From assembly GCA_002794465.1 (NCBI GenBank), contig MTSL01000050.1:43077-75076 (forward strand): a stretch of DNA of 32,000 bases, read 5' to 3'. Each line of letters begins with the position of its first letter. Within the stretch, counting starts at the first letter, position 1. The notes under the pieces were generated by a model. That model saw only the letters and a program-made list of their open reading frames with translations, did no database searches and was not told the origin of the DNA. This stretch comes from Paramicrosporidium saccamoebae KSL3. Lineage: Eukaryota; Fungi; Cryptomycota. Both the position numbers and the translations under genes were made by a program. Positions 4,610 through 32,000 of this stretch are shown one piece after another.

Positions 4610-4666
4610 TACAGTGTGATTATATGAAAGGAGGTTTGGAACATGCACGCCCTGCCTATGGTATTG

Positions 4667-4768: not shown

Positions 4769-4771
4769 TGT

Positions 4772-4999: not shown

Positions 5000-5019
5000 G
5001 ACCCCGACAATGTTTATTA

Positions 5020-5264
5020 CTATTTTAAGTACTTGAATAGTCGTTTGGCAACCTACAGGTCAGTCGTCTTACAGTTGGTACGCAATTATCAATGCATGGA
5101 GTGAGGTCAAAGAGCTCCTCGTTGCAGGTTTCGGTGGTTCCGGGCCTCGATTGAACACGTCTCGCACATTCTTCGTATTTTTCAAGCAACGGACGGCACG
5201 CCTCTGAAGTACGACAGATCTCCTCCAACCGCTCCTTGGGACATGTCACTTCCTCCTCCGACAT
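5020..5264 (-). CDS. QCR6: Cytochrome bc1 complex subunit 6 (hinge), 71 aa; exons 5264-5082 and 5052-5020
   Basis: Twin Cys-helix pattern PKERLEEIC...C..LLEKYEECARRV...ETCNEELFDL..CIDNC. Splicing the 29-nt intron gives the canonical tail VAKRLFKYLK. Confidence 0.92.
5053..5081 (-). other. 29-nt spliceosomal intron in QCR6
   Basis: GTACCA...CTGAC-CTGTAG on the minus strand. Confidence 0.9.
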
Positions 5265-5295
5265 TTTTAAATTTGCGATTTATGGGAAATTCATT

Positions 5296-14967: not shown

Positions 14968-17042
14968 ATGAATACTATGTTGGCTGGTCCGCATTCCCCA
15001 CCGCCCGAGTCATTGAACTTGTACCTTGGCACAGGCGCTGATGAATAGATATGTGACAGGCGAGGGATTCTATTTTGAACCAAATTACGTGATTCCGGTA
15101 AACACCAAGCCGACGTTGCAAATTGCAAGGCCGGATGGGACGATTCGAGTCAACGAACCTGTGTCCTTTGCATTGCCCTCTCGTCCGCAGCGCACAGTCT
15201 ATGGCATATTGGGAATGATTCAGCTCTTATCAGGCATTCTTTTAGCCAGTCGCTCATCATTAGGTCCTTATCTTATTGTAATCACCGAGCGAAAATTGGC
15301 TTGCCGATTCCTCGGCCACTACATCTGGAAAGTGACTGGCTCGGATATCCTTCCATGCGGCAACGGCACTAATGGCCTGGACTCTCAGCAGCGCGCTGAC
15401 GAAGACAAGTTTGTGGAATTGCTCAAGACATTTCTGGCTTCAGACTGGATTTACTACTCTTCAACATACGATCTGACTCGTAGCCTTCAGTCCGAGGTTA
15501 CTTCCAGACACGAAAAAAGCTTCCTTCGGGCCAACTTGCGTTTTGTTGTCAACCGGTTTATTGCGGCTCCCTTCATACAGGTGCTGGAACAACGCACTGA
15601 TACCCGGTTGGAGGACTTTTTAGTCTTTTGCATTGAAGGATGTACGTCTGGTGTTGGTGGCGTGATTTGTGTAGTTGTTGAACTTCAATCTTTGACAATT
15701 CACCAGAAAAAAGTTACATTTGGTGTCATTTCGAGACGATCAACGGGAAGAGTTGGTAGAGACCACCAATAGCACTGATATTGTAGGTACAAGATATCAC
15801 TCTCGAGGAATTGACGATAAGGGAAATGTTTCCAATTTTGTGGAAACGGAGCAGATTGTGCTTGTGGACGACGATGTTGCCAGTTTTGTGCAGATCCGTG
15901 GTTCTATTCCGCTGTTTTGGAGACAGAACATTAACATTCGATACAAGCCGCCCTTTGAGTTTTACAACCATGCAAGCATGACAAGCGTGTTTGAGGCGCA
16001 TTTCAAAAGATTGCTGGAAGACTATGGACAAGTGACGGCAGTGAATCTGGTGAACCACCGTGGATGGGAGGGGGAACTAGCCAAAATGTTTGCTAAACAA
16101 GCGCGAGAATTTTCCGATCCCAAGATGAATTATGTGCCGTTTGATTTTAACAAGCAGTGTCCTCGAATGCAATGGGATCGGGTTAGTATTCTCCTTGATC
16201 AGATTGAAGGCGAAATGAGTCAGCAAGGCTGGTTTACAGGAAGACTTGAGCGTCCCCATGGAGATGGACAACTTTCCTTTACTCAAATTTCTCAAAAACA
16301 GAACGGAGTCGTTCGTACAAACTGCATCGACTGTCTTGATCGAACCAACCTGGTCCAAGGATACCTTGGCCGTCGCATCTTGACGCTTCAACTCTGCCAT
16401 TTTGGAGTTCTTGACAAGACTGAGACGGTGCAAGATTGTCCCGAGTTGGAGATGCTTTTTAAACAGAGTACAAAGAGTTGGAATTATTAATTGTTCATAG
16501 TTTGGGCCGACAATGGAGACGCTGTTAGTCGACAATATTCAGGGACGGGAGCGTTGAAAGCAGACTTTACTAGGACGGGACGACGCACCAAAATGGGCTT
16601 GGTGGCTGATGGTGTCAACTCGATGATGAGATTTTTCCTCAACAACTTTACAGATGGAAAACGCCAGGACGCCATGGATTTATTCTATGGGCACTATACA
16701 GTTCGCCTGGACAACTATTACTCTCCATTCATATATCGATTCGATTACCAACTCCTCGTCTCACCAGCAATTATGGTCGCCAGTTTCCTTGTCATGTTCT
16801 ATCTTTTGCTCACTTCCAGTCTCTCAGCCGGCACCCGTCTCTTTATGACATTGTTCGTGACGTTCATCTTTCTTTTTGCCACCATGGTGTTCTTCAATGA
16901 TGGTGTACGCTATGTGCAGTATCCTAGGTTGCGACCACCGCCTGTGGCAGCATATGCCCGTCCCTGGGCCTCGGCGCTTGCTGATAAACAGAGGAAGCTA
17001 TTCAATGCCATTGATCCGTCCCGAAAAGTTCACGTGATCTAG
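14968..17042 (+). CDS. SAC1: Phosphoinositide phosphatase SAC1, ~639 aa; exons 14968-15020, 15049-15233, 15264-15641, 15675-15755, 15787-16467, 16501-17042
   Basis: ESLNLYVTGEGFYFEP N-terminus, RVGTRYHSRGID, NFVETEQI, QIRGSIPLFW, catalytic RTNCIDCLDRTN, IWADNGD, GTGALK, two C-terminal TM helices. Spliced length 1920 nt is a multiple of 3. The start could be 14977. Confidence 0.93.
15021..15048 (+). other. SAC1 intron 1, 28 nt
   Basis: GTACCT...CTGAT-GAATAG. Joins SLNL to YVTG in frame. Confidence 0.82.
15234..15263 (+). other. SAC1 intron 2, 30 nt, non-canonical GC-AG, stop-free and in frame
   Basis: CAG|GCATTC...CTCAT-CATTAG|G. Removal converts LLSG-ILLASRSSLG-PYLIVIT to LLSGPYLIVIT, collinear with Sac1 orthologs. 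Confidence 0.7.
15642..15674 (+). other. SAC1 intron 3, 33 nt, stop-free and in frame
   Basis: GTACGT...GTGAT-TTGTGTAG. Removal restores CIEGFVE. Confidence 0.8.
15756..15786 (+). other. SAC1 intron 4, 31 nt
   Basis: GTAGAG...CTGAT-ATTGTAG. Restores RVGTRY. Confidence 0.9.
16468..16500 (+). other. SAC1 intron 5, 33 nt, contains an in-frame TAA
   Basis: GTACAA...TTAAT-TGTTCATAG. Restores FKQIWADNGD. Confidence 0.9.
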
Positions 17043-17114: not shown

Positions 17115-18884
17115 TTACCATGCAAGTGTTACAAAATTGTCGCTGTACATACTTAAAAGATCCTGAAATTTCAGAATCAGCGCTACAATTACCACAAGAA
17201 TCACAGCCGCATTTTCCAAATTGCGGGGTTCTCGATGCAACGCAATAGTCGAGGCATAGTGATGTATTCGATTCAACTCAACAGACGAAGCACAGGCTCC
17301 CTTCTTACCAATCTCTAGGAATGCTGGTATAGAATCCATGAGTGGGCTGTCCAAGTCATCTCTGTCGGGTACGCAGCCCCACATCTTTGCATACTGCCTA
17401 TGTTTGTAAAAGGTCCAGTCCAACTTGTATTCCTCGTCAGTCCTACGCACACACGACTCGTAATCAAAGTCAGTGGATTTCCCAAACAGCGCTTCCCACT
17501 CAAAGTAGTTACGACACTCTCCCCAATACCCATCATGGCTCCGATTGTCAAACAGCAGCCATTTCTTTGTCGGTGCGCGAATCGATTCGAAAAGGGACCA
17601 TGCTGGCATATAGGCGGCGTTGAGATCCATCCTGCTCGCCATTATATAAATGGCAGTCTTGTGAGTAGTGGCTGGATACTCCTCAGAGAGTTTACGCTCG
17701 TTCAGGAAGGGATTCAGGAGTTTCCAATCTCGGTAATACACTTCCGGATAATACACTCCCGGGTGTAGGTCGGTGTGATCAGGGAGTGGTTCAGGTGCAG
17801 CACCCTTTGGGAAATCCTGGTACTTTATATCAATCAAGATAACAGAATTCACCAAAGAATTTATCCCAGGGACATCTTCATCGTTGACCGCTTGCAATGA
17901 GAAAGCCTCTATCATTGGCTGCAAGACTTTGGTACGATAATCTTCCGCATTGGTACACTTTTCGGTAGCCATAAGGAATGGGAGCAGGAGCTGCTGTGAC
18001 CTAAAGTCATTGCTTTCTATCGGCTCTCTTGAAGGAGTTAACAACCAATTATGCAGTATCCTTGAGATCTCGCGAGTACGTTCTCCCACTGTGCCTGTGA
18101 GCTTGCTCCCCAACTTGTCATGAAACATCTTGGTGCAGTCGTTGTAATACTCCTTACCCAAGTTCCAAACTGCCGAGTTCATGGACTCATAAACATTGCC
18201 TCCCATCTTACGGCGACAAAACTTGTCTTTGGCACATATTTCAGCCAGGCCAACCAGGCTCCTTTCATGCTCCCCTCCTGAAATTGGAGGAACACCTCCG
18301 AGAAAGACACTATCAAATATATTGGGAGTTAGTTGCACAACATGGTGGGCCCATTGAGCACCATACGAAAACCCGTGCAAAACAATTCGGGCTGAGGAGC
18401 CCACTTTCGATCGTATTGCCATGCCGAGCATGGACACATCTAAGGCTGCATTAGTCATGATCAAGTCTCGAACATCGCAGTCTCTACTCTTAACTGCCTT
18501 TGAGAGCGCATAATGGTTAGCCTTTAGTACAGTCCCTTTTAACGGGAACCCTCCCGAACGACCCAGCCCTCTGTGGTCAACGAGATACGCAGCGACAGGC
18601 CCACCATACTTTCTAATCAACCGAATCGCATTATTAGCTTCACCATCCCCATCGCATCCAGGACCACCGGCAAGTAGAATTACATGGACCTCCGGGCAAC
18701 TACCAGGTTTGATATATCGTTCAACATACAGCGAAAATTGTTTTCCCAGTGGTCTGTCATAATCGGAAGGTACATTTACTCTACCACTATGTACACCAAG
18801 TCCCTCGACCGAACAGCCTTCTCTAGTGCATGGTCCCCATTTTACTGTAGGATTCAACGCAGATAATTTGAGCTCGCGGCCCAT
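17115..18884 (-). CDS. Alpha/beta-hydrolase (S33/TAP-like serine hydrolase), copy 1, 589 aa
   Basis: LAGGPG, YLVDHRGLGRSG, GFSYG (Ser), SRMD (Asp), NRSHDG (His), C-terminal hydrophobic segment. Confidence 0.85.
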   Translation of the reverse strand: MGRELKLSALNPTVKWGPCTREGCSVEGLGVHSGRVNVPSDYDRPLGKQFSLYVERYIKPGSCPEVHVILLAGGPGCDGDGEANNAIRLIRKYGGPVAAYLVDHRGLGRSGGFPLKGTVLKANHYALSKAVKSRDCDVRDLIMTNAALDVSMLGMAIRSKVGSSARIVLHGFSYGAQWAHHVVQLTPNIFDSVFLGGVPPISGGEHERSLVGLAEICAKDKFCRRKMGGNVYESMNSAVWNLGKEYYNDCTKMFHDKLGSKLTGTVGERTREISRILHNWLLTPSREPIESNDFRSQQLLLPFLMATEKCTNAEDYRTKVLQPMIEAFSLQAVNDEDVPGINSLVNSVILIDIKYQDFPKGAAPEPLPDHTDLHPGVYYPEVYYRDWKLLNPFLNERKLSEEYPATTHKTAIYIMASRMDLNAAYMPAWSLFESIRAPTKKWLLFDNRSHDGYWGECRNYFEWEALFGKSTDFDYESCVRRTDEEYKLDWTFYKHRQYAKMWGCVPDRDDLDSPLMDSIPAFLEIGKKGACASSVELNRIHHYASTIALHREPRNLENAAVILVVIVALILKFQDLLSMYSDNFVTLAW

Positions 18885-19007
18885 TTAGTCCAAACAGCCA
18901 GGGATTTATTTCAAAGGGCGCTCCATAAACATTACTGTAAGAATATAATGTATCTACAGAGCAGGGATAGCGGGTCTTTGGATACATGACGACTTTAATG
19001 AAACGTA

Positions 19008-19285
19008 CATCTCTTAATAGGATTATTTGTAATGCTCATTCTCGTCTTTGCCATTATGCTATTCTTCAATGATTATATATGCATGCCATGTGCAGTATTT
19101 CAGGTCACGGCCTCCGCCTGTGGCGGCAGATGCCCGTCCCTGGGCCTTGGCACTTACTGATAAACAACGAAAGCTGTTCAATGCTATCGATCCACCCAGT
19201 AAGATCACATGATCCGATCGTATGTGCATTTGAAGTAATATAGAGTGATGAACAGCCTCTTGCTGCGTTTAACATGTCTAGGTTG
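19008..19285 (+). pseudogene. Decayed copy of SAC1 last-exon 3' end and 3' UTR (spacer 1)
   Basis: e.g. GCCTGTGGCGGCAGATGCCCGTCCCTGGGCCTTGGCACTTACTGATAAACA vs SAC1 GCCTGTGGCAGCATATGCCCGTCCCTGGGCCTCGGCGCTTGCTGATAAACA. Frameshifted. Confidence 0.9.
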
Positions 19286-19313
19286 TATATATTGGGCTTG
19301 TCAAAGTTTATAA

Positions 19314-21002
19314 TTAGGATGGACCCTGAAATTTCAAGAACACCATTGCAATCAATAAAAAGATTACAAAAGAAGTATTCAGAGGACTATATTTTCGATC
19401 CAACTCGGCAGGCGAAGCATGGACCCCCATCTCGCCCATCTCTAGGAATACTGGTATAGGATCCATGAATGGGCCGTCCAAGTCATTGCTGTCAGGTACG
19501 CAGTCCCACATTTGTGCGTACTTGTCATGCTCGGAAAAGGTCCAATCCAACTCATATACCTTTTCAGTCCTACGGACGCATGACTCGAAATCAAAGCCAG
19601 TGGATTTTCCAAAAAGAGCCTCCCACTCAAAGTAGTCATGGCATTCTCCCCAATACCCATCGTGCCACCGATTTTCGAACAGCAGCCATTTCTTTATCGG
19701 AGCGGCAATCAATTCGAAAAGGGACCATGCTGGCATATAAGAGGTGACAAGATCCATTTTGCTCGCCATCATATAGATTGCAGTCTTATGAGTAACGGCC
19801 GGGTGTTCCTTGGAAAGCTTGCGGCCCATCAGGAACGGGCTTAGAAGTTTCCATCGTTGGTGATACCATTCCGGATAATACACTTCCGGATGTAGGTCTA
19901 TGTAATCGAAGGGTGGTTCAGGCGTGCCGTTTGAGAAATCCCGATAGTCCACATCAATCAGGATAACAGAATTCACTACATCGTTCAACTCATCGTCATT
20001 TGATTCTTGCAGTGAGAGGATTTCTAGTATTGGCGACAAGACTTTGGTACGATATTCAAGCGCGTTGGTGCACTTTTCAGTAGCCATCAGGAGCGGAAGC
20101 AAGAGCTGCTGTGGCCTGAAATTATTGCTTTCGCACAATTTCCCCAAGGAATTTGTCAGCAGCTCATCCAACGCCTCGGAGATTTCGCGAGTACGCTCCC
20201 CTATTGTGCCTGTGAGTTTGTTTCCCAGCTTGCCATGAAACATCTTGTTGCATTCATTGTAGTATTCTTTACCCAATTTCCAAACTGCAGAGTTCATAGA
20301 CTTGTAAACATTGCCTCCCATCTTGCGGCGACAAAACTCGTCTTTGGCACACACCTCAGCCAGACCAACGAAACTATCTTTGTGCTCCACTCCTGAAACT
20401 GCAGGGACACCCCCGAGAAAGGCACTGTCGAATATGTTGGGGGTCAACTGCACGACATGGTGGGCCCATTGAGCACCATACGAAAACCCATGCAGAACAA
20501 TCCGGGCTGAGGTGTTTAATTCCGCTCGTATTGCCATGGCAAGCATGGACACATCCAAAGCTGCGTTAGTCATGGTCAAATCTTGAACATGAAAAGCACC
20601 ATCTTCAAATGATTTTGAAAGTGTATCGTGACTGGCCTTTAATACAGTACCCTCTAACAAAAACTTTCCCGAACGACCTAGCCCTCGGTGGTCAACGAGA
20701 TATGCAGCGACGGACCCGCCATACCCTCTAACCAACCGAGCCGCATGGCTTTGTTGATTCTTCCCATCATAACCAGGACCGCCGGCAAGTATTACTACAT
20801 GGACTTTTGGGTGACTACCACCTGGTTTGGTGTATCGTTCGACATATAGTGAGAATAGATTTTCTGATGGTTTATCGTAGTCTGATGGCACCGTTACTCT
20901 GCCCTTATGGACATCAAGTCCATTGACGTAACAGTCTTTTCTATTGCATGGCCTCCATTCAACTGTAGGATTCAAGACCGATAGTTTGGGCTCATGGTCC
21001 AT
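19314..21002 (-). CDS. Alpha/beta-hydrolase copy 2, 562 aa
   Basis: GGPG, DHRGLGRSG, GFSYG, SKMD, NRWHDG, hydrophobic tail. Confidence 0.85.
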   Translation of the reverse strand: MDHEPKLSVLNPTVEWRPCNRKDCYVNGLDVHKGRVTVPSDYDKPSENLFSLYVERYTKPGGSHPKVHVVILAGGPGYDGKNQQSHAARLVRGYGGSVAAYLVDHRGLGRSGKFLLEGTVLKASHDTLSKSFEDGAFHVQDLTMTNAALDVSMLAMAIRAELNTSARIVLHGFSYGAQWAHHVVQLTPNIFDSAFLGGVPAVSGVEHKDSFVGLAEVCAKDEFCRRKMGGNVYKSMNSAVWKLGKEYYNECNKMFHGKLGNKLTGTIGERTREISEALDELLTNSLGKLCESNNFRPQQLLLPLLMATEKCTNALEYRTKVLSPILEILSLQESNDDELNDVVNSVILIDVDYRDFSNGTPEPPFDYIDLHPEVYYPEWYHQRWKLLSPFLMGRKLSKEHPAVTHKTAIYMMASKMDLVTSYMPAWSLFELIAAPIKKWLLFENRWHDGYWGECHDYFEWEALFGKSTGFDFESCVRRTEKVYELDWTFSEHDKYAQMWDCVPDSNDLDGPFMDPIPVFLEMGEMGVHASPAELDRKYSPLNTSFVIFLLIAMVFLKFQGPS

Positions 21003-21249
21003 TTAACTCCGGCGGCCAGGGATTTGCTTCAGGGCGCACCATAAAAATTAATATGAAAAACACCATCTAGGGAGTAAGGATAAAAGATCTTTAGACGCCT
21101 CACAATTAAGGTGATTGTTGCCATCAATTTTAGTGCAATAACAATTAAATCATCGGCTCCCTGTCTCACTTTTAACAACGACAGCCAAGCTTTTCGTAAT
21201 ATTCCATCTTTGGTTTACTTTAGGTTTCACAGTTAGCACATGCCTCTGA

Positions 21250-21505
21250 ATGATATTGCTCGTGGTGTTCATCCTCCTCTTTATCACCATAATATACTAT
21301 ACGTGCAGTAACCCAGGCTGCGGCTTCCATCTGTGGCAGCATATGCTCGTCCCTGGGTCTCTGCGCCCGCTAGCAGACAAAGGAAGCTATTCAATTCAAT
21401 CGATCCGTTCTAAAAGTTCACGCAATCTAATCTTATGTGCAGGTTAAGTAATAAATAATGGAGCACAGTTCCTTGTTACTGCGCTCCTAAAGTCTAGATT
21501 GTCTA
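21250..21505 (+). pseudogene. Decayed SAC1 3' fragment (spacer 2)
   Basis: CTGTGGCAGCATATGCTCGTCCCTGGG...AGGAAGCTATTCAAT...AAAAGTTCACG...GTAATAAATA matches SAC1 ~16850-17105. Confidence 0.88.
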
Positions 21506-21538
21506 TATTGAAATTGTCACGCGGGCAGTACAAACTGG

Positions 21539-23263
21539 TCATAATCCATGTTGCGATGAAGACGAAATCTTCAATAGCAACATTACAACCATCAAAAGGA
21601 TTACAAAAGTACCATCCAGAGGGCGATATTCCCGATTCAACTTGACAGATGAGGCATAGATTCCCATCCTATTAATCTCTAAAAACACCGGCACAGGGTT
21701 TATGAGTGGACCGTCCAAGTCATTTCTGTCAGGTACGCAGTCCCACATCTTTGCATACTTGTCATTCTTGGAAAAGGTCCAATCCAACTTGTATTTCCTG
21801 TCAGTCCTACGCACACATGATTCGAAATCAAGGCCGGTGTGTCTCCCAAAAAGAGCCTCCCGCTCAAAGTGGTCAGAACATTCCCCTTCGTATCCATCAG
21901 GATGCCCGCGATTGTCAAACAGCAGCCATTTCTTTATCGGAGCATCAATCAAGTTAAAGAGGGACCATGCTGGCATGTAAGTGGTGTTGAGGTCCATCTT
22001 GCTTGCCATCATATAGATGGCCGTCTTCTTAGTGATAGCTGGATGCTCCTTGGAGAGTTTGCGGTTCATCAGGAACGGGCGTAGGAGCTCCCATCGTTGG
22101 TAATACCGTTCCGGATAGTACACTTCCGGATGTAGGTCTGTGTGATTGAAGGGTGGTTCAGGTATACCGTTTGAGAAATCTTGATAATCTACATCAATCC
22201 GAATAACCGAGTTGACTAAATCACTCCAATCATGAATATTGCAATCACCGGATATATCATTCTTTGGTTCTTGAATTGAGAGAATCTCTAGTATTGGCGA
22301 CAAGACTTTGATATGATATTCAAGCGCGTTGGTGCAAGTTTCAGTAGCCATCAGGAAGGGAAGCAAAAGCTGCTGTGGCCTGAAATCATTGCTTTCATCT
22401 AGCCTCTCTAAAGAATTTGTCAGCAGCTCATGCAATGCCTCGGAGATTCCGCGAGTATGCCTCCCTATTGTGCCTGTGAGTTTGCTCCCCAGCTTGCCAT
22501 GAAACATCTTGGTGCATTCGTTGTAGTATTCCTTTCCCAATTTCCAAACTGCAGAGTTCATAGATTTGTAAACATTGCCTCCCATCTTGCGGCGACAAAA
22601 CTCGTCTTTGGCGCACACCTCGGCCAGGCCAATCAAACTATCTTTGTGCTTAGCTCCTGAAATTGAAGGGACGCCTCCGAGAAAGGCACTGTCGAATATG
22701 TTGGGGGTCAGTTGCACGACATGGTGGGCCCATTGAGCACCATATGAGAACCCACGTAAAACAATCCGGGCTGAGGAGCCTACTTTTGATCGTATTGCCA
22801 TAGCGAGCATAGAAACATCCAATGCCGCATTAGTCATGATCAAGTCTCGAATGTCAAAAGCGCTGCCTTCGAATGCTCTTGAAAGTGTATCATGACTAGC
22901 CATTAATACAGCGTCCTCTAATGGGAACTCTCCCGAGCCTCCTAGTCCTCTGTGGTCAATGAGATATGTAGCAATAGACCCCCCATACTCTTTAACCAAC
23001 TGAACTGCCAGGAGTTGCTGACCCGTCCCACTGGAGCCAGGACCACCGGCAAGTATAATTACATGGACCTCCGGGCGAATACCAAGTTTGGTGTATCGCT
23101 CGACGTACAGCGAAAACCGTTTTCCCAGTGGTCTGTCATAATCTGAAGGCACATTTACTTTACCACTATGTACACCAAGTCCCTCGACCGAGCAGCCTTC
23201 TCTAGTGCATGGTCTCCATTTTACCGCAGGATTCAAAGCAGATAGCTTGAGCTCGTGGCCCAT
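21539..23263 (-). CDS. Alpha/beta-hydrolase copy 3, 574 aa
   Basis: GGPG, DHRGLGGSG, GFSYG, SKMD, NRGHPDG, hydrophobic tail. Confidence 0.85.
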   Translation of the reverse strand: MGHELKLSALNPAVKWRPCTREGCSVEGLGVHSGKVNVPSDYDRPLGKRFSLYVERYTKLGIRPEVHVIILAGGPGSSGTGQQLLAVQLVKEYGGSIATYLIDHRGLGGSGEFPLEDAVLMASHDTLSRAFEGSAFDIRDLIMTNAALDVSMLAMAIRSKVGSSARIVLRGFSYGAQWAHHVVQLTPNIFDSAFLGGVPSISGAKHKDSLIGLAEVCAKDEFCRRKMGGNVYKSMNSAVWKLGKEYYNECTKMFHGKLGSKLTGTIGRHTRGISEALHELLTNSLERLDESNDFRPQQLLLPFLMATETCTNALEYHIKVLSPILEILSIQEPKNDISGDCNIHDWSDLVNSVIRIDVDYQDFSNGIPEPPFNHTDLHPEVYYPERYYQRWELLRPFLMNRKLSKEHPAITKKTAIYMMASKMDLNTTYMPAWSLFNLIDAPIKKWLLFDNRGHPDGYEGECSDHFEREALFGRHTGLDFESCVRRTDRKYKLDWTFSKNDKYAKMWDCVPDRNDLDGPLINPVPVFLEINRMGIYASSVKLNREYRPLDGTFVILLMVVMLLLKISSSSQHGL

Positions 23264-23380
23264 TTAGCCCAAACAGCCGGGGATTTATTCCAAAGGGCGC
23301 TCCATAAACATTGCTGTAAGGATATAATGCATCCACAGAGTGGGGATAGCGGGTCTTTAGACACCCCACAGCTCGAATAA

Positions 23381-23740
23381 CCATTTCCATCAATTGGGCT
23401 ACCTATTCTTTGTCTCATTACTAATCATAGCCGCCAATTTTCTTGTCATACTCTATCTTTTGCTTACTTCTAGTTTCACAATCGGTATCTGTCTCTGAAA
23501 TGGCATTATTTGCAATGTTCTTCTTCACTATCAGGGCGTAACCTAGATATAGTATCCCAGGTTGAAGCCTCCGCCTGAGGCAGCACATGTCCGTCCATGG
23601 ACCTTGACACTTGCTGCTAAACAGAAGAAGTTGTTTAATGCCATTGATTCGTCCCAAAAAGCTTACGTGGTTTAATTGCACGTGTGCTTGGAATAGTGGC
23701 GAGCAGTTTCCTGTTGCTTTGTTCACAATGTCTGGGTTGT
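23381..23740 (+). pseudogene. Decayed SAC1 3' fragment, long type (spacer 3)
   Basis: CTTGTCATACTCTATCTTTTGCTTACTTCTAGT vs SAC1 CTTGTCATGTTCTATCTTTTGCTCACTTCCAGT. Homology extends from ~16730 to ~17105 of SAC1. Confidence 0.88.
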
Positions 23741-23786
23741 CGATTCGATTTGCCGTATGGGCAGTATAAATTTTCGCATCGCAGGC

Positions 23787-25499
23787 CTAGAACGGACTTG
23801 AGATTATCAGAACCAGCATTGCAAATACCAAAAACATCACCAAAGCATTGTTTGAAGAGCGGCATATTAGATCCAACTCGGCAGGCGAGGCATAAACTCC
23901 CCGATCACCAATCTCTAGGAATACCGGTACAGGGTCCATTAATGGGCCGTCCAAGTCATTTCTGTCAGGTACACAGTCCCACATTTGTGCATAATTTCTA
24001 TGACTGGAAAAGGTCCAGTCCAACTCATATACCTTGTCAGTCCTACGAACACACGACTCAAAATCAAAGCCAGTGGATTTTCCAAACAACGCCTCCCACT
24101 CAAAGTAGTCACGACACTCTCCCCAATATCCATCATGGCTCCGATTGTCGAACAGCAGCCATTTCTTTGTCGGAGTACCAACCAAGTTGAAAAGAGACCA
24201 TGCTGGCATGTAAGGGGTAATAAAATCCGCCTTGCTCGCCATTATATAAATATTAGTTATACGGGTATTGGCTGGATGCTCCTCAGAGAGCTTACGACCC
24301 TTCAGGAACGGTCCTAAGAGCTTCCATTTCCGGTAATAAACTTCTGGATAGTGCACTTCCGGATGTAGGTCCGTGTGATCGGAGAGCGGGTCAGGTGCGC
24401 CCTTTGGGAAATCTCTATGACACACATCAAGCTGAATAACACAATTCACTATGTAATTCTTCCCAGGAATAGTATCGCCACTGGCTGTATAATCATTCGG
24501 TTCTTGCAATGAGAGCGCCTCTATTATCGGCTGCAAAACTTTGGTACGATATTCTGCCGCATTGGTACACTTTTCGGTGGCCATTAGAAATGGGAGCAGG
24601 AGCTGCTGTGACCTAAAATTATTTCTTCCTTTCAGGTTTTTTGAAGAATTAGCCAACCATTTGTGTAGTATCCTTGAGATCTCGCGAGTACGCTCCCCAA
24701 CTGTGCCTGTTAGGTTGATTCCCAGCTCACCATGAAACATTTTGATGCATTCGTTGTAGTATTCTTTACCCAATTTCCAAACCGCAGAGTTCATAGACTC
24801 ATAAACATCGCCTCCCATCTTGCGACGACAAAAATCGTCCTTGGCACATATTTCAGCCAGGCCAGTTAAACTGTCTTTGGGCTCCACTCCTGAGATTGGA
24901 GGAGCACCTCCGAGAAAGGCACTGTCGAATAGATTGGGAGTTAGTTGCACGGCATGATGGGCCCACTGGGCGCCATAAGAAAACCCACGCAAAACAATCC
25001 TGGCTGAGGTGGTTAGTTCCGCTCGTATTGCCATGGCAAGCATGGACACATCCAACGCCGCATTAGTCATGATCAAGTCTCGAATATCAAAAGCACTGCC
25101 GTCAAATGCTTTTGAAAGTGTATCAAGGTTGAAATCTGATACCCCTCCCTCTAACGAAAACTCTCCCGAGCCTCCTAGTCCTCTGTGGTCAATGGTATAA
25201 GCAGCAATAGACCCGCCATACTCGCTAACCAGCCGAATCGCATGATGACGTTCTGTCTTCCCATCGTGGCCAGGTCCACCGGCAAGAAGAATCACGTGGA
25301 CTTTTGGGTGACTACCACCTGGTTTGGTATATCGTTCAATGTACAGCGAAAATTGCTTTTCTGATGGCTCGTCATAGTCTGACGGCACGTTTACTTTACC
25401 GCTATGTATGTCAAGCCCATTGACATGATAGTCTTTTCTAGTGCACGGCCCCCACTTAACTGTAGGATTCAAAGCAGATAGTATGGGCTCATGGCCCAT
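23787..25499 (-). CDS. Alpha/beta-hydrolase copy 4, 570 aa
   Basis: GGPG, YTIDHRGLGGSG, GFSYG, SKAD, NRSHDG, hydrophobic tail. Confidence 0.85.
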   Translation of the reverse strand: MGHEPILSALNPTVKWGPCTRKDYHVNGLDIHSGKVNVPSDYDEPSEKQFSLYIERYTKPGGSHPKVHVILLAGGPGHDGKTERHHAIRLVSEYGGSIAAYTIDHRGLGGSGEFSLEGGVSDFNLDTLSKAFDGSAFDIRDLIMTNAALDVSMLAMAIRAELTTSARIVLRGFSYGAQWAHHAVQLTPNLFDSAFLGGAPPISGVEPKDSLTGLAEICAKDDFCRRKMGGDVYESMNSAVWKLGKEYYNECIKMFHGELGINLTGTVGERTREISRILHKWLANSSKNLKGRNNFRSQQLLLPFLMATEKCTNAAEYRTKVLQPIIEALSLQEPNDYTASGDTIPGKNYIVNCVIQLDVCHRDFPKGAPDPLSDHTDLHPEVHYPEVYYRKWKLLGPFLKGRKLSEEHPANTRITNIYIMASKADFITPYMPAWSLFNLVGTPTKKWLLFDNRSHDGYWGECRDYFEWEALFGKSTGFDFESCVRRTDKVYELDWTFSSHRNYAQMWDCVPDRNDLDGPLMDPVPVFLEIGDRGVYASPAELDLICRSSNNALVMFLVFAMLVLIISSPF

Positions 25500-25620
25500 T
25501 TAACTCCGATGGCCAGGGCTCTACTTCAAAAGGCGCTTCATAGACATTAATGGGAGTATATTACATTCACAGAGTAGGGATAAAGGGGCCTTTAGTCACC
25601 TCATAGCTTGAATAAATCAT

Positions 25621-25880
25621 CCGTCTTTTAATGGCATTATTTGCAATTTTCCTCCCCCTTGCCACCATGGTTTTATTGGATAACGATGCACGCTACGCGC
25701 AATATCCCCAGGTGGCAGCACATGTCCGTCCCTGGGCCCCGGCTTTTGCTGATAAGTATAGAGAGCTGTTGAAGGTCATTATCCACCCAGAAAATACGGG
25801 ATAACCTGTATGGGATGCTAAACCAGACCCTACTGTTTACCAGCCTCTTGTTGCCGTGTCCATAGTGTCTAAGCTATCTG
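25621..25880 (+). pseudogene. Decayed SAC1 3' fragment (spacer 4)
   Basis: TTGCCACCATGGT, ACGCTA, GTGGCAGCACATGTCCGTCCCTGGGCCCCGGCTTTTGCTGATAA all match SAC1. Confidence 0.85.
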
Positions 25881-25936
25881 TAAGATCCTCCGTGCAGACA
25901 GTATAAAAATATCGCCGTGCATACTTAAAACAGGCC

Positions 25937-27637
25937 TTAAAATTTTAGAAGCAGCACTACAACTACCACAAGAATAATAGGCCCATTTTTCAAAATGCGG
26001 TATTCTCCATAAGAATTGGTGGCCGGGGCATAGACTCCCATCTCACCAATCTCTAGGAATGTTGATAAAGAGTCCCTAAATGGGCCATCCAAGTCATTTC
26101 TGTCGGGTACACAGTCCCACATTTGTGCATAATTTCTATGACTGGAAAAGGTCCAGTCCAACTCATATACCTTGTCAGTCCTACGGACGCACGACTCGAA
26201 ATCAAAGCTAGTGGACTTTCCAAAAAGAGCCTCCCTCTCGAGATAGTCATGGCATTCTCCCCAATATCCATCATGCCACCGATTGTCGAAAAGCAGCCAT
26301 TTCTTTATCGGAGCGTCAATCAAGTTAAAAAGAGACCACGCTGGCATGTAAGTGGTGTTGAGGTCCATCTTGCTCGCCATCATATATATGGCAGTCCTAT
26401 GAGTAATAGCTGGATGCTCCTTGGAGAGCTTGCGATCCTTCAAGAACGAATATAAGAGGTTCCATTTTTGGTAATACCACTCCGGATAACACACTGACGG
26501 ATGTAGGTCTGTGTGATCAGAGAGTGGCTCAGGCGCACCCTTTGGGAAATCCTGGTAGTCCATGCCAATCCGAACCACAGAATTTACTAAATCATTCAAC
26601 TCATGAAGACTACAGTCGCTGGATGAACGTCCATCTGGTCTTTGCGATGAAAGGGTTTCTATTATCGGCTGCAAGACTTTGGTACGATAATCTTCCACAT
26701 TGGTACACTTTTCGGTAGCCATAAGGAATGGGAGCAAGAGTTGCTGTGACCTAAAATTATTCCTCTCTTTCAGTTCCATTGAAGGATTGGCCAGCCAATT
26801 ATACAGTATCCTTGAGATCTCGCGGGTACGTTCCCCTACTGTGCCTGTGAGTTTGCTTCCCAGCTCACCATGAAACATCTTGGTGCATTCGTTGTAGTCT
26901 TCCTTACCCAAGTTCCAAACTGCAGAGTTCATGGACTCATAAACATCGCCTCCCATCTTGCGACGACAAAAATCGTCTTTGGCGCACACCTCAGCCAGGC
27001 CAATCAAATTATTTCTGTGCTCCATTCCTGGAATTGAAGGAACACATCCGAGAAAGGCACTGTCAAATATGTTGGGGGTCAGTTGCACGGCATGATGGGC
27101 CCATTGGGCGCCATAAGAAAACCCACGCAAAACAATCCTGGCTGAGGAGCCTACTTCCGTTCGTATTGCCATGGCGAGCACGGAAACATCCAACGCCGCA
27201 TTAGTCATGATCAGGTCTCGAATGTCAAAAGCACTGCCTTCAAATGCTTTTGAAAGTACATCATGGCTGGCCTTTAATACAGTACCCTCTAACAAAAACT
27301 TTCCCGAGCGTCCTAGTCCTCGATGGTCAACGAGATACGCAGCGACAGACCCACCATATTTTGTAATCAACCGAATTGCATGGCTTTGTTGACTCTTTCC
27401 ATCATAACCAGGACCACCGGCAAGTATAATTACATGGACTTTTGGGCGACTACCACCCGGTTTGGTGTATCGCTCGACATATAGTGAAAATAGATTTTCT
27501 GAGGGTTTATCGTAGTCTGATGGTACAGTTACTCTTCCCTTATGTACATCGAGCCCCTCAACAGAGCAATCTTTTCTAGTGCACAGTCTCCATTCAACTG
27601 TGGGATTCAAGACAGATAGTTCGGGCTCATGATCCAT
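25937..27637 (-). CDS. Alpha/beta-hydrolase copy 5, 566 aa
   Basis: GGPG, DHRGLGRSG, GFSYG, SKMD, NRWHDG, hydrophobic tail. Confidence 0.85.
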   Translation of the reverse strand: MDHEPELSVLNPTVEWRLCTRKDCSVEGLDVHKGRVTVPSDYDKPSENLFSLYVERYTKPGGSRPKVHVIILAGGPGYDGKSQQSHAIRLITKYGGSVAAYLVDHRGLGRSGKFLLEGTVLKASHDVLSKAFEGSAFDIRDLIMTNAALDVSVLAMAIRTEVGSSARIVLRGFSYGAQWAHHAVQLTPNIFDSAFLGCVPSIPGMEHRNNLIGLAEVCAKDDFCRRKMGGDVYESMNSAVWNLGKEDYNECTKMFHGELGSKLTGTVGERTREISRILYNWLANPSMELKERNNFRSQQLLLPFLMATEKCTNVEDYRTKVLQPIIETLSSQRPDGRSSSDCSLHELNDLVNSVVRIGMDYQDFPKGAPEPLSDHTDLHPSVCYPEWYYQKWNLLYSFLKDRKLSKEHPAITHRTAIYMMASKMDLNTTYMPAWSLFNLIDAPIKKWLLFDNRWHDGYWGECHDYLEREALFGKSTSFDFESCVRRTDKVYELDWTFSSHRNYAQMWDCVPDRNDLDGPFRDSLSTFLEIGEMGVYAPATNSYGEYRILKNGPIILVVVVVLLLKF

Positions 27638-27757
27638 TTAACTCCGACGGCCAGGGGTTTACTCCAATGGGAGCTCCATAAACATTAATATGAAAAATTA
27701 ATATCTAAGGCGTAAGGATAAAGGATCCGTGGGCACCTCACAGCTTGAATAAATCAT

Positions 27758-27970
27758 CCGTCTCTTAATGACATTACTTGTAATGTTTATATTTGCCATT
27801 GTAGTGTTCTTAAATGACAGTGTGCGCTACATTTAGTACCCCCAGGCTGTGATCTCTGCTTGTGGCAGCATATGCTTGTCAATGAGCCTCGGCGCTTGCC
27901 GATAACTAGAGAAAGCTGTTCAGTGAAATTAATCCACCCAGGAAGATTGCGCAATGATTCGTATATGTGG
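27758..27970 (+). pseudogene. Decayed SAC1 3' fragment (spacer 5)
   Basis: CCGTCTCTTAATGACATT, TGTGGCAGCATATGC and GCCTCGGCGCTTGCCGATAA match SAC1. Confidence 0.85.
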
Positions 27971-28054
27971 TCGGAATAATGGCAACTAATCTCTTGTTCC
28001 TGTGCTCTCAAATAAGTTCATCTTGGGGTATTACAATCCTGTTGCGGTGCACTT

Positions 28055-29767
28055 TTAAAGTGGGCCCCAGATCTGCAGAACCAGCATGGCAAATACCAAA
28101 AAAATTACAAAAGCATCATTTGGGGAGCGGTGTATTCGATCCAACTCGGCCGGCAAAGCATAGACCCCCACCTCGCCAATTACTAGGAATGTTGGCAAAG
28201 AGTCCCTAAATGGGCCGTCCAAGTCATCTCTGTCGGGTACACAACCCCACATCTGTGCATACTTGCTATGCCTGGAAAAGGTCCAGTCCAGCTTTCGGTA
28301 TCGTTCATCAGTCCTACGCACGCATGACTCGAAATCAAAGCCAGTGGATTTCCCAAAAAGAGCCTCCCACTCAAAATAGTCATGGCACTCTCCCCAATAT
28401 CCATCATGGCTCCGATTTTCGAATAATAGCCATTTCTTTGTTGGCGCACGAATCGATTCGAAAAGAGACCATGCCGGCATGTAAGTGGTGTTGAGGTCCA
28501 TCTTGCTCGCCATCATATAAATTGCAGTTCTATGGGTGATGGCTGGATGTTCCTTGGAGAGTCTACGATCCATCAAGAACGGGTGTAAGAGCTTCCATCT
28601 TCGGTAATATGACTTTGGATATTGCACAGTCGGGTGTAAGTCGGTGTGATCAGAGAGCGGCTCAGGCGCACCGTTTGGAAAATCCCGATAGTTTACATCA
28701 ATCCTAATGGCAGAATTCACCACATCGTTCATCTCAGAGAAACCGCCATTGCTGACTACAGGGCTATTTGGCCCTTGAATCGAGAGGAGATCTAGTATTG
28801 GCTGCAATACCTTGGTACGATAATCTGATGCGTTGATACATTTTTCGGTGGCCATTAGAAATGGGAGCAAGAGCTGCTGTGGTCTAAAACTATTGCTTTC
28901 TTCCAGTCTTCCTAAAGTATTTGCCAGCAGCTCATGCAATGCTGTCGAAATATTGCGTGTACGTTCCCCCACTGTACCCATGAGTTTGCTTCCCAGCTCA
29001 CTATGAAACATTTTGGTGCATTCATTGTAGTATCCCTTACCCAGGTTCCAAACTGCACAGTTCATAGACTCATAAACGTCGCCTCCCATCTTACGGCGGC
29101 AAAACTCATCTTTGGCGCACACCTCAGCCAGGCCAATCAAACTATCTTTGTGCTTTACTCCTGAAACTGCAGGAACACCTCCGAGAAAGGCACTGTCAAA
29201 TATGTTGGGGGTCAACTGCACGACATGGTGGGCCCATTGAGCGCCATATGAGAACCCACGCAACACAATTCGGATCGAGGTGTCTAATCCCGCTCGTAAT
29301 GCCATGGCAAACATGGACACATCTAGGGCTGCATTAGTCATGGTCAGGTATCGAGTGTCAAAAGCTCTGCCCTCAAATGCTTTTGAAAGCGCGTCGGAGT
29401 TAGAATTTAATACATCCCCGTTTAACGAGAACTCTCCCGAGCGACCTAGACCTCTGTGGTCAATAGTATATGCAGCGATAGACCTACCATGACTATTAAC
29501 CAGCCGGAATGCATTGTGTCGTTCTGTCTTCCCGTCGGAGCCAGGACCACCGGCGAGAAGAATTACATGGACTTTGGGGTGACTATTAGGTTTGATGAGT
29601 CGTTCGACATACAGTGAAAATTTCTTTTCCAATGGTTTGTCGTAATCTGAAGGTACATCCACTCTGCCGCTGTGTACATCAAGTCCCTCAAAAAACCAGC
29701 CTTCTCTAGTGCATGGCCCCCATGTTACCGTAGGATTCAAAGCAGATAATTTGGGCCCATGGTCCAT
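28055..29767 (-). CDS. Alpha/beta-hydrolase copy 6, 570 aa
   Basis: GGPG, YTIDHRGLGRSG, GFSYG, SKMD, NRSHDG, hydrophobic tail. Confidence 0.85.
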   Translation of the reverse strand: MDHGPKLSALNPTVTWGPCTREGWFFEGLDVHSGRVDVPSDYDKPLEKKFSLYVERLIKPNSHPKVHVILLAGGPGSDGKTERHNAFRLVNSHGRSIAAYTIDHRGLGRSGEFSLNGDVLNSNSDALSKAFEGRAFDTRYLTMTNAALDVSMFAMALRAGLDTSIRIVLRGFSYGAQWAHHVVQLTPNIFDSAFLGGVPAVSGVKHKDSLIGLAEVCAKDEFCRRKMGGDVYESMNCAVWNLGKGYYNECTKMFHSELGSKLMGTVGERTRNISTALHELLANTLGRLEESNSFRPQQLLLPFLMATEKCINASDYRTKVLQPILDLLSIQGPNSPVVSNGGFSEMNDVVNSAIRIDVNYRDFPNGAPEPLSDHTDLHPTVQYPKSYYRRWKLLHPFLMDRRLSKEHPAITHRTAIYMMASKMDLNTTYMPAWSLFESIRAPTKKWLLFENRSHDGYWGECHDYFEWEALFGKSTGFDFESCVRRTDERYRKLDWTFSRHSKYAQMWGCVPDRDDLDGPFRDSLPTFLVIGEVGVYALPAELDRIHRSPNDAFVIFLVFAMLVLQIWGPL

Positions 29768-29825
29768 CTAACTCTACGGCCAGGGATCTATTTCAGAATG
29801 CACTCCATAGACATTAATGGGGGTG

Positions 29826-30015
29826 TGACGTAGAGGGTTAATTAGGCGTGTATTTGAGGATAGTTTCCTAGTTTGGAGAAGACCTAGTTGCTGGGTATTT
29901 GAGGACAGTGAGATGTGTATCCATAATATTATAGAATTAGCAGTGAACAAATCCCCCTTTCCGTCTCTTCCCGCTTGACAAAGTCCGTGATTTTATCCCC
30001 ACTACGCGGCAGATG
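29826..30015. other. ~190-nt insertion splitting the upstream block of hydrolase copy 6
   Basis: Its flanks are contiguous in copy 4 (25540-25610). Internal 11-nt direct repeat GTATTTGAGGA (29850, 29895). Imperfect 9-nt subterminal inverted repeat (29829-37 / 29998-30006). Boundaries approximate. Confidence 0.55.
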
Positions 30016-30076
30016 TATTACCTTCACAGAGTAGGGGTAAAGGGCCTTTAGATACCCCACAACTCGAATGAATCTT

Positions 30077-30300
30077 CCATCACTTTGACTACCGGCTTTT
30101 CTTTTTGTTATTAATAATGCCCGCCAGTTATCTGGCACATCTTATCTTCTGCTTACCTCCAGTCTTGCAGCTGGCATCTGTTTTGAATAGCAGTATTCCT
30201 GACCTTTATCTTTTTCTCTGTCACTATAGTGCTCTTAAATAACAGTATACGCTATGTGTAGTATTCCAGATTCAAGTCTCTGCTTGTGGCATCATACGCG
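30077..30300 (+). pseudogene. Decayed SAC1 3' fragment, long type (spacer 6)
   Basis: CGCCAGTT, TATCTTCTGCTTACCTCCAGTCTTGCAGCTGGCA and TACGCTATGTGTAGTAT match SAC1 ~16730-16960. Confidence 0.85.
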
Positions 30301-30417
30301 ATGAACCGTAGGTGTATTCAAAATCGTAATGGCCGGCCTCTTGCTGTTGTGCCTGCAATATCCGGGCTATCTACTGGACTTGCCATGCGGGTACTGTACA
30401 TTTGTCGCAATGCATCA

Positions 30418-32000
30418 TTAGAATGAGCTTTGGAATCTCAGAAACAGTGTTGTAACTACCAAAAGGATTGCAAGCGCATTATTCAGAGGGTGGTATTTTC
30501 GATCCAACTCGGCAGGTGAGGCATAAACTCCCCGATCACCAATCTCTAGGAATGCCGGTATAGGGTCCATGAATGGACCGTCCAAGTCAGTTGTGTCAGG
30601 CACACAGTTCCACATCTGTGCATACTTGTCGTGCTTGGAAAAGGTCCAGTCCAACTCGTATTTCTTGTCAGTCCTACGCACGCATGACGCGAAATCAAAG
30701 CCAGTGGATTTCCCAAAAAGAGCCTCCCACTCAAAGTAGTCACGGCACTCTCCCCAATACCCGTCATAATGCCCACGATTGTCAAACAACAGCCATTTCT
30801 TTGTCGGAGCGTCAATCAAGTCAAAAAGAGACCACACTGGCATGTACGTAGTGTTGAGGTCCATTTTGCTCGCCATCATATACATCGAAGTTCTACGGGT
30901 AATGGCTGGATGCTCCTCAGAGAGCCTGCGATTCACCAGAAACGAACACAGGAGCTTCCATCTTTGGTAATACACTTTCGGATAATACACTGCCGAATGT
31001 AGGTCCGTGTGATCAGAGAGTGGTTCAGGCACACCCTTTGAGAAATCCTGATAGTATACATCAAGCTGAATAACAGAATTCACTACATCATTCCACTCAT
31101 CATTGACTGAATTCTCATTTAATCTTCGCGGCGAAAGAGTTTCTAGTATTGGCTGCAAGACTTTGGTACGGTATTCTGCCGTATTGGTGCATCGTTCAGT
31201 AGCCATCAGAAATGGGAGCAAAAGCTGTTGGGATCTAAAATTATCGCTTTCTTCCTGTTTTCTGGAAGCATTTGTTAACAGATCATACAATATACCCGAG
31301 ATCCTACCAGTACGTTCCCCTACCGTGCCTGTGAGCTCGTTTCGCAACTTGTCATGAAACATCTTGGTGCATTCATTGTGGTACTCCTTTCCCAATTTCC
31401 AAACTGCAGAGTTCATAGACTTGTAAGCATTGCCTCCCACCTTGCGGCGGCAAAACTCGTCTTTGGCACACACTTCAGCCAGGCCAATTAAACTGTCTTT
31501 GTGCTCCACTCCTGAAATTGGAGGAACGCCTCCGAGAAAGGCGCTATCAACTATGTTGGGTGTCAATCGAACGACATGATGGGCCCACCTGGCACCATAG
31601 GACATTCCCCACAAAACAATTCGAGCCAAAGTACCTACTTCCGTTCGTATTGCCATAGCGAGCATGGAAACATCCAACGCCGCATTAGTCAGGATCAAGT
31701 CTCGAACATCAAAAGAACTGCCGCTAAATGCTTCTAAAAGTGCACAATGACTAGCCTCTAACACGGTCCCTTTTAACGGAAACTCTCCCGAGCCTCCTAG
31801 TCCTCTGTGGTCAACAAGATACGCAGCGACAGACCCGCCATACCCTCTGACCAGCCGAATCGCATGATACCGTTCTGTTTTGCCGTCGTGGCCAGGCCCA
31901 CCGGCAAGGAGAATCACATGGACTTCTGGACGACTGTTAGGCATAGTGTATCGTTCAATGTACAGCGAAAATTGCTTTTCTGATGGCTCGTCATAGTCTG
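30418..32000 (-). CDS. Alpha/beta-hydrolase copy 7, 5' end beyond the window
   Basis: Frame is open to position 32000 (DYDEPSEKQFSLYIERYTMP...). GGPG, DHRGLGGSG, GMSYG, SKMD, NRGHYDG, hydrophobic tail. Confidence 0.85.
   Translation of the reverse strand, partial: DYDEPSEKQFSLYIERYTMPNSRPEVHVILLAGGPGHDGKTERYHAIRLVRGYGGSVAAYLVDHRGLGGSGEFPLKGTVLEASHCALLEAFSGSSFDVRDLILTNAALDVSMLAMAIRTEVGTLARIVLWGMSYGARWAHHVVRLTPNIVDSAFLGGVPPISGVEHKDSLIGLAEVCAKDEFCRRKVGGNAYKSMNSAVWKLGKEYHNECTKMFHDKLRNELTGTVGERTGRISGILYDLLTNASRKQEESDNFRSQQLLLPFLMATERCTNTAEYRTKVLQPILETLSPRRLNENSVNDEWNDVVNSVIQLDVYYQDFSKGVPEPLSDHTDLHSAVYYPKVYYQRWKLLCSFLVNRRLSEEHPAITRRTSMYMMASKMDLNTTYMPVWSLFDLIDAPTKKWLLFDNRGHYDGYWGECRDYFEWEALFGKSTGFDFASCVRRTDKKYELDWTFSKHDKYAQMWNCVPDTTDLDGPFMDPIPAFLEIGDRGVYASPAELDRKYHPLNNALAILLVVTTLFLRFQSSF

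Follow-up and report, generated by a model that had tools for sequence, protein, structure and literature searches.

A lineage-specific tandem array of Hip1-like S33 hydrolase genes with predicted membrane anchors in Paramicrosporidium saccamoebae KSL3

Introduction

What is encoded by a row of similar serine hydrolase genes on contig MTSL01000050.1 of Paramicrosporidium saccamoebae KSL3 (Fungi; Cryptomycota; assembly GCA_002794465.1), how did it arise, and does it represent a new system? The DNA analysed was a stretch of 32,000 nucleotides (nt) at positions 43,077 to 75,076 of the forward strand of this contig, referred to below as the window, and the hydrolase array occupies it from position 17115 to the end. 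A preliminary description, made from the sequence alone, had proposed an undescribed system of diversified enzymes kept by selection. The array is read here, with a probability of roughly 60%, as a lineage-specific tandem set of catalytically competent, C-terminally membrane-anchored S33 hydrolases of the Hip1/tripeptidyl-peptidase branch.

Results

Layout of the array

From 17115 to the end of the window, the minus strand carries seven hydrolase open reading frames (ORFs) in head-to-tail order; six of them were complete, with lengths of 562–589 amino acids (aa) (Table 1). The frame of copy 7 was still open at base 32000 (..DYDEPSEKQFSLYIERYT..); this copy is therefore a truncated view of a full gene, and the array may extend further. 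No internal stops or frameshifts were found in the seven ORFs, and their colinearity with homologues showed that they are intronless. These results bear out the preliminary description, which had reported at least seven intact, intronless, head-to-tail paralogs filling almost half of the window (measured, 46%). The spacers were 417–650 nt long, each differing in length and indel pattern. Pairwise identity among the copies was 68–75% for the proteins and 75–81% for the coding DNA. The codon usage of the copies fitted that of the neighbouring genes (r = 0.86), so an origin by horizontal transfer was considered unlikely. A 168-aa ORF with a GTG start (23684–24190, plus strand) has its start in a spacer and overlaps copy 4 in antisense; it was unsupported and is most likely spurious.

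Table 1. Coordinates of the hydrolase copies, the SAC1-like gene and its relics, and the conserved upstream blocks in the window
Feature	Position	Strand	Remarks
SAC1-like gene	15026–17042	+	split into three ORFs
Last exon of the intact SAC1-like gene	16501–17042	+	convergent with copy 1; the relics in the spacers derive from it
Copy 1	17115–18884	-	589 aa; closest to SAC1; longest tail past the hydrophobic helix (16 aa)
Upstream block of copy 1	18885–18994	-	conserved, about 110 nt upstream of the ATG; TCCCTGGC motif and short upstream ORF
SAC1 3'-end relic, spacer 1/2	19011–19206	+	56% aa identity over 59 codons, indels
Copy 2	19314–21002	-	562 aa; used for modelling; catalytic Ser174/Asp417/His447
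Equivalent upstream block	21003–21112	-	
SAC1 3'-end relic, spacer 2/3	21279–21407	+	in-frame stop
Copy 3	21539–23263	-	574 aa
Equivalent upstream block	23264–23373	-	
SAC1 3'-end relic, spacer 3/4	23388–23675	+	longest, about 100 codons; several stops
Copy 4	23787–25499	-	570 aa
Equivalent upstream block	25500–25609	-	
SAC1 3'-end relic, spacer 4/5	25592–25780	+	stops, one deletion
Copy 5	25937–27637	-	566 aa
Equivalent upstream block	27638–27747	-	
SAC1 3'-end relic, spacer 5/6	27735–27948	+	stops, frameshift
Copy 6	28055–29767	-	570 aa
Equivalent upstream block	29768–29877	-	
SAC1 3'-end relic, spacer 6/7	30127–30300	+	most diverged relic
Copy 7	30418–32000 and beyond	-	cut by the window end; 526 codons visible

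Family, fold and catalytic residues

The four motifs that had been reported as kept by every copy (GGPG, G-x-S-x-G, Asp and His) were invariant in 7/7 copies, as GGPG, G-F/M-S-Y-G, the Asp of MAS(K/R)xD and the His of NRxH, and so was HRGLG. The nucleophile motif was GFSYG (GMSYG in copy 7), the Asp stood in the context MASKMD and the His in the context NRxHDGY. With residues numbered as in copy 2, the G-x-S-x-G elbow was followed by the triad S174/D417/H447, in the Ser-Asp-His order of alpha/beta hydrolases. In 23 distant relatives, GGPG, HRGxG, R106-G107, D150, G172/S174/G176, C218, C224, D417 and H447 were invariant, and W16, C251 and C311 were nearly invariant.

Matches of the copies to Pfam models stayed below threshold, and the NCBIfam scan gave S33 matches below threshold or none; placement in a family therefore required profile and fold searches. 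More distant relatives passed the Pfam thresholds, and the bacterial relatives found by profile carried PF00561, PF12146 and PF08386, of which PF08386 is the C-terminal TAP-like domain. A profile built from the seven copies matched Hip1 of Mycobacterium tuberculosis weakly (E = 0.002, N-terminus only). A profile of 23 diverse relatives matched Hip1 (E = 1e-23), TnmK1 (E = 7e-16; TnmK1/2) and DM3, followed by prolyl aminopeptidases. The alignment with Hip1 covered the nucleophile region, and the C-terminal Asp/His region followed as a second, weaker stretch. The search with hidden Markov models (HMMs) suggested in the preliminary description thus failed with the Pfam S33 models but succeeded with the family profile.

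The AlphaFold (AF2) model of copy 2 had a predicted local distance difference test score (pLDDT) of 78 and a predicted template modelling score (pTM) of 0.82. It predicted an alpha/beta core with a helical lid of about 200 residues (residues ~200–405) after strand 6. Foldseek analysis of this model gave 738 PDB matches at E ≤ 1e-3. The best among the matches listed were alpha/beta hydrolases, namely Hip1 (E = 1e-13), TnmK1/2, DM3 and S28 peptidases, with modest template modelling scores (TM-scores) of 0.4–0.54. The S33/TAP-like alpha/beta-hydrolase assignment of the preliminary description thus held in both profile and fold searches.

Hip1 (Rv2224c, "carboxylesterase A"; PDB 5UGQ, 7SFM) was the best match by sequence profile and by fold. 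It shares with the window proteins the N-terminal W..C...VP.DY module, GGPG, GxSxG, the large helical lid after strand 6, a C-x-x-D/N-x-x-C motif and association with a membrane or envelope (PMC4022732). The spacing of the triad (Ser-Asp/Asp-His) was 243/30 in the copies vs 235/27 in Hip1 (S228, D463, H490; PMC4022732). However, identity was about 16%, the TM-score was 0.4–0.47 and the lid was different; Hip1 is a bacterial protein with an N-terminal signal that is exported to the cell envelope, whereas the window proteins are eukaryotic, without a signal and with a C-terminal helix as putative anchor. The serine protease Hip1 cleaves esters as well, and disulfide bonds are predicted for its many cysteines (PMC4022732). 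A recent classification unites Hip1 and the tripeptidyl peptidases in one of three S33 clusters (PMC11878206). The tripeptidyl peptidases A/B/C of Streptomyces lividans (Tap, SlpD, SlpE; MEROPS S33.002 cluster) belong to the same S33 sub-cluster as Hip1 (PMC11878206, PMC4022732); in the window copies, by contrast, neither PF08386 nor the other Pfam models reached threshold. By homology, the window proteins are placed in the Hip1/tripeptidyl-peptidase cluster of S33.

Predicted membrane anchor and topology

All copies had a single C-terminal hydrophobic segment (hydropathy value KD15 2.35–3.3) ending 0–16 aa from the C-terminus. By hydropathy, no N-terminal hydrophobic segment or signal peptide was found (KD15 ≤ 0.45 in all copies). 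Neither of the features by which export is recognised in the Hip1 cluster, a signal peptide or a lipobox, was present, and the layout was that of tail-anchored proteins, with no signal peptide and one transmembrane segment within about 30 aa of the C-terminus. The copies and their nearest clade shared a conserved Met start about 12–15 residues before the W..C motif, and an in-frame TAA directly preceded each hydrolase ATG. A signal peptide on a hidden 5' exon in the spacers was considered and rejected: no hydrophobic ORF was found there, a TAA abuts each ATG, and the Met start is conserved throughout the clade.

More distant relatives had an N-terminal signal peptide, and some of them also had a transmembrane segment followed by a basic tail, which is the layout of a type I ecto-enzyme. 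Since the signal peptide is present in distant relatives and absent from the clade, the clade has lost it while keeping the anchor and the family-wide cysteines. The window copies are thus predicted to be membrane-anchored. Sequence rules alone would make them tail-anchored and cytosol-facing; the retained cysteines instead argue for an extracytosolic domain. Of the two roles suggested in the preliminary description, a soluble host-interaction effector is unlikely, because there is no N-terminal signal peptide and a single C-terminal hydrophobic helix is present; the copies may, however, be surface enzymes.

Origin of the array and selection on the copies

Spacer alignment showed that each spacer was homologous to the sequence directly downstream of copy 1, that is, to the 3' end of the convergent SAC1-like gene. 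Searching with the C-terminal SAC1 exon (tblastn) revealed a fragment of it in 6/6 spacers, with 40–65% identity and with in-frame stops, deletions and frameshifts. The duplicated unit therefore consisted of the upstream region, the hydrolase gene and the last ~100 codons of SAC1. As expected for tandem duplication, the units had the same orientation and every junction carried foreign flanking sequence, the SAC1 3' relic.

The Jukes-Cantor (JC) distance from relic to relic averaged 0.57, which was comparable with the synonymous divergence (dS) of the hydrolases (0.51–0.81). The co-duplicated SAC1 fragments are an internal neutral control that decayed at roughly the synonymous rate. The JC distance from the live SAC1 exon to the relics climbed with physical distance (0.26, 0.29, 0.32, 0.39, 0.45, 0.48); hydrolase dS had no such gradient, and the relic alignments were short (~170–230 nt). 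Such a gradient could arise if the array had grown from the SAC1 end, or if gene conversion depended on distance.

The ratio of nonsynonymous to synonymous divergence (dN/dS) between pairs of copies was 0.20–0.33 by the Nei-Gojobori method (NG86), whose estimates are approximate at dS ~0.7 and blurred by gene conversion. The copies are old and under purifying selection. Neutral evolution with dN/dS near 1 everywhere, which the preliminary description had named as speaking against itself, was not observed; its proposal that selection keeps the copies intact agrees with this range and with the stop-containing state of the SAC1 fragments duplicated along with them.

In sliding windows of 30 codons the maximum dN/dS was 0.69. 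The least constrained parts were the indel-rich lid loop (~316–352, 0.53–0.61) and the juxtamembrane and transmembrane tail (0.56–0.69); the most constrained were the nucleophile region (0.07) and the lid segment 211–255 (0.12–0.15). Positions with at least four amino-acid states clustered at 78–93 (from the residue after GGPG), 273–290, 328–339 and 373–393 and in the transmembrane segment. This clustering agrees with divergence at the active-site rim and the lid, without proving it. With no window reaching 1, "diversified" in the sense of positive diversifying selection was not upheld at this resolution.

Recombination between copies

The closest neighbour of each copy shifted along the gene. 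In nt 1–270, copies 1 and 3, 2 and 5, and 4 and 7 were sister pairs (97–100% bootstrap). In nt 541–1080, copies 2 and 3 were paired (100% bootstrap), and the pairs of nt 1–270 received 0%. Neighbouring informative sites were less incompatible than permuted ones (0.533 vs 0.583 ± 0.006), and 0/1000 permutations reached the observed value. The shifting sister pairs and the incompatibility test together indicate that the copies are mosaics produced by ectopic recombination or gene conversion, and the whole-gene tree is star-like for this reason.

A related pattern was seen in environmental paralogues of JGI 3300042203 and 3300042204 (L007/L008; P0001, P0002), which had near-identical C-terminal halves and divergent N-terminal halves. 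It would be explained either by recent gene conversion between paralogues there or by chimeric metagenome assembly.

Distribution of the array and of the family

Four contigs of relatives keep the gene order UCH-ATG4-ABC-Tim17-BCS1-SAC1. None of these four syntenic contigs had a hydrolase gene after SAC1; other genes (ORC-like and others) stood there. The seven window copies were monophyletic (93% bootstrap), and their sisters were environmental proteins with 55–57% identity. From the missing hydrolase at the SAC1 site of relatives and from monophyly, the array is lineage-specific. No SAC1 relics were found beside the hydrolase copies of relatives (L007–L009).

The family as such is not rare. 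In an exhaustive HMM search it numbered 63 clusters at E < 1e-30; relaxing the threshold to E < 1e-10 gave 351, and relaxing it to E < 1e-3 gave 1457. The 63 clusters at the strictest threshold overturned an impression of a tiny family that a word-indexed protein search had given (6 close relatives). A scan of metagenome contigs with the family alignment gave nothing usable, and the collection evidently did not contain the known JGI relatives.

Tandem or near-tandem copies were found at several loci. A JGI contig (L009) held the end of one hydrolase copy, with the next copy starting about 340 nt on; an ENA contig (L010) held three copies, two of them adjacent; and a Logan contig (L012) held two copies about 8 kb apart. 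In P. saccamoebae itself, MTSL01000113.1 (L011:126–5831) held two units in one 1901-aa model annotated "Proteinase (Secreted protein)". Local duplication has thus recurred in this family, and the window array was the largest found. Within the 1901-aa model, the hydrolase units lay at about 2916–4385 and 4533–5450, together with ~900 unrelated N-terminal residues; the model is probably an annotation fusion of adjacent genes.

The P. saccamoebae paralogues ("putative exported protease" P0003; PSACC_01830, P0130; "Proteinase (Secreted protein)" P0140/P0144) had 36–40% identity to the window copies, the closest named one 40%. There were at least six members, and at one locus two units were adjacent. 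Their clade is that of the window copies, with which they share the conserved Met start, the lack of a signal peptide and the C-terminal transmembrane segment. Unlike the array, they are dispersed over contigs, have a basic tail after the transmembrane segment, form no seven-copy array, and none lies beside SAC1.

Homologues in P. saccamoebae have already been annotated automatically as exported protease or S33 TAP-like. The P. saccamoebae genome paper makes no mention of proteases or hydrolases, and literature searches found no description of the hydrolase family in Rozellomycota. The proposed "undescribed system" did not stand, since the array results from an expansion of paralogues in a known enzyme family that is automatically annotated in the same species and is multi-copy and partly tandem in relatives.

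Upstream regions

A TCCCTGGC(C) motif was found 12–25 nt before the hydrolase ATG in 6/6 spacers, one of which reads CCCCGGC. The motif recurred before a tandem copy of an environmental relative (L009:1290–1320) with 55% protein identity; having been kept at no more than this identity, it is probably a functional promoter or 5' untranslated region element. An 8-codon upstream ORF (M-x-M-x-x-x-L-x-stop) was present 40–65 nt before the ATG in 5/6 spacers despite substitutions (e.g., 18925–18951, minus strand). Copy 2 differs in having a 16-codon upstream ORF that overlaps the main start. The upstream ORF may reflect translational control or mere shared ancestry. The conserved blocks suggest that each copy has kept its own regulatory region.

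Flanking genes

The flanking genes were ordinary eukaryotic housekeeping genes: ICMT, OGG1, an MGM1-type dynamin, UCH, ATG4, an ABCC-type transporter, a Tim17-family gene, BCS1 and SAC1. The ABC assignment was based on the translation and on Pfam matches of the counterparts in relatives. The gaps between flanking ORFs were 11, 72, 84, 178, 205, 303 and 626 nt, so the packing at 8–30 nt given in the preliminary description was wrong. No tRNA or Rfam features were found in the window.

In the SAC1-like gene, a 33-nt GT..AG intron with an in-frame TAA (16468–16500, plus strand) joins ..LFKQ to IWADNGD.., and at least one further short intron or frame change lies near 15720–15772. The 33-nt intron shows that the genome has introns, and ultra-short ones; the hydrolase genes are without any.

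The window BCS1 had 73–79% identity to proteins of environmental contigs, 96% to one JGI fragment covering 71% of the protein, and about 50–56% to named early-diverging fungi. The ATG4 homologue (6101–8800, minus strand) was 899 aa long, with the Peptidase_C54 domain confined to residues 618–879. A long N-terminal extension of ATG4 was also found in relatives (867 aa in L004, 749 aa in L006).

Discussion

The results show the following history. A segment made up of one hydrolase gene with its promoter, together with ~100 codons from the end of the neighbouring, convergent SAC1-like gene, was duplicated head to tail and then amplified to at least seven units of ~2.1–2.4 kb. Ectopic recombination or gene conversion between units came later and produced mosaic copies, and every hydrolase ORF, with its catalytic triad and the short upstream motif, was retained by purifying selection. 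The enzymes would be active hydrolases; most probably they are peptidases with an additional ester-cleaving activity, like Hip1, and each is presumably tethered to a membrane by its single C-terminal helix. Because the paralogues differ mainly after GGPG, in parts of the lid and in the anchor, they are read as having overlapping, non-identical substrate preferences. Their role is probably to process or scavenge peptides on the surface of a membrane in a reduced cell of Rozellomycota type. This cell is probably parasitic, a lifestyle taken from the affiliation alone.

Several points weigh against this interpretation. All Pfam S33 and alpha/beta-hydrolase matches of the copies fell below the gathering score (best PF12146, 20.9 vs 27 bits), three copies had no such match in the Pfam scan, and PF08386 matched none of the copies. 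The activity of all copies is read from sequence constraint, and the substrate class is not predictable in this family, as TnmK1 shows, which matches the fold closely but does not function as a hydrolase. Sliding windows of 30 codons gave no dN/dS above 1, so different substrate preferences are argued solely from the clustering of variable sites; the dN/dS values themselves carry the uncertainty of the method given above. Finally, because the copies lack a signal peptide, their catalytic domains may lie on the cytosolic side, a position that would weaken the case for a role at an external surface.

This last point leads to a possible, if doubtful, alternative, in which the proteins are tail-anchored, cytosol-facing esterases or lipases. 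Once the signal peptide had been lost, the C-terminal helix would be inserted post-translationally as a tail anchor, and the catalytic domains, on the cytosolic face of the endoplasmic reticulum or of organelles, would work on lipids or small esters rather than on peptides from the host or the extracellular space. This alternative would account for the missing N-terminal hydrophobic segment, the single transmembrane segment 0–16 aa from the C-terminus, and the stop directly before each ATG with a Met start conserved across the clade; Hip1-type enzymes do hydrolyse esters (PMC4022732). However, four family-wide cysteines are kept in every copy and throughout the signal-less clade, and the predicted disulfide bonding of the Hip1 cysteines (PMC4022732) suggests an oxidising, extracytosolic compartment. 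The relatives of ancestral type, moreover, are type I ecto-enzymes with a signal peptide, a transmembrane segment and a basic tail.

It is unlikely that the array reflects dosage amplification alone, with redundant copies kept for more enzyme and their differences being drift at tolerated positions. The dN/dS below 1 everywhere, the identical catalytic and core residues and the similar upstream regions, which suggest common regulation, would all fit such redundancy. The proteins, however, are 25–32% different and old (dS 0.5–0.8), and arrays held for dosage are usually near-identical through frequent conversion. The hypervariable positions, moreover, are clustered after GGPG and in the lid and are not evenly spread.

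A bolder proposal goes further than the interpretation favoured here and is quite improbable. In it, the copies would belong to a distinct, undescribed clade of Hip1-like peptidases in Paramicrosporidium-type Rozellomycota that lack the signal peptide, keep the anchor and the disulfide cysteines, and were tandem-amplified independently in several lineages. The window array would then be a recombining repertoire of enzymes displayed on the surface at the parasite-host interface, which they would reach through non-classical export.

Use of the fold for something other than hydrolysis, such as TnmK1-like chemistry, binding or scaffolding, is very improbable: TnmK1/2 are among the best fold matches, but neither the oxyanion motif nor any residue of the Ser-Asp-His triad varies among the copies or their distant relatives, and no biosynthetic gene cluster lies nearby. 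An assembly artefact (uncollapsed haplotypes or mis-joined repeats) or neutral decay of recent duplicates is effectively refuted, for although tandem repeats are error-prone in assembly and the window ends inside the array, all pairs differ by 19–25% of nucleotides, the spacers are unique in length (417–650 nt), each unit has a differently decayed relic, and the ORFs are intact beside neutral relics that gathered stops.

Lineage-specific tandem expansions of gene families are found in reduced parasites and pathogenic fungi, as in the large families of microsporidia and the protease expansions of chytrids. The window array resembles these in its head-to-tail paralogues, species-specific copy number, membrane or secretory features and recombination between copies. 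Such expansions are usually recognised by their signal peptides together with signs of host exposure or positive selection, neither of which is shown for the window array. The array is a real but ordinary lineage-specific expansion of a known enzyme family and no new system; the one truly unexplained feature is that the signal peptide was lost and the anchor kept.

In very compact genomes, multi-copy families that are retained point to the needs of the lifestyle, and the array is a reasonable candidate for a function in nutrition or at the host interface of poorly known intracellular parasites. The locus also illustrates clearly how a tandem array forms and evolves: the SAC1 fragment marks the limits of the unit, gives its age and acts as an internal neutral control, and mosaic recombination is plain in the copies. 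The loss of the signal peptide with the anchor and cysteines kept poses a concrete question of membrane-protein topology.

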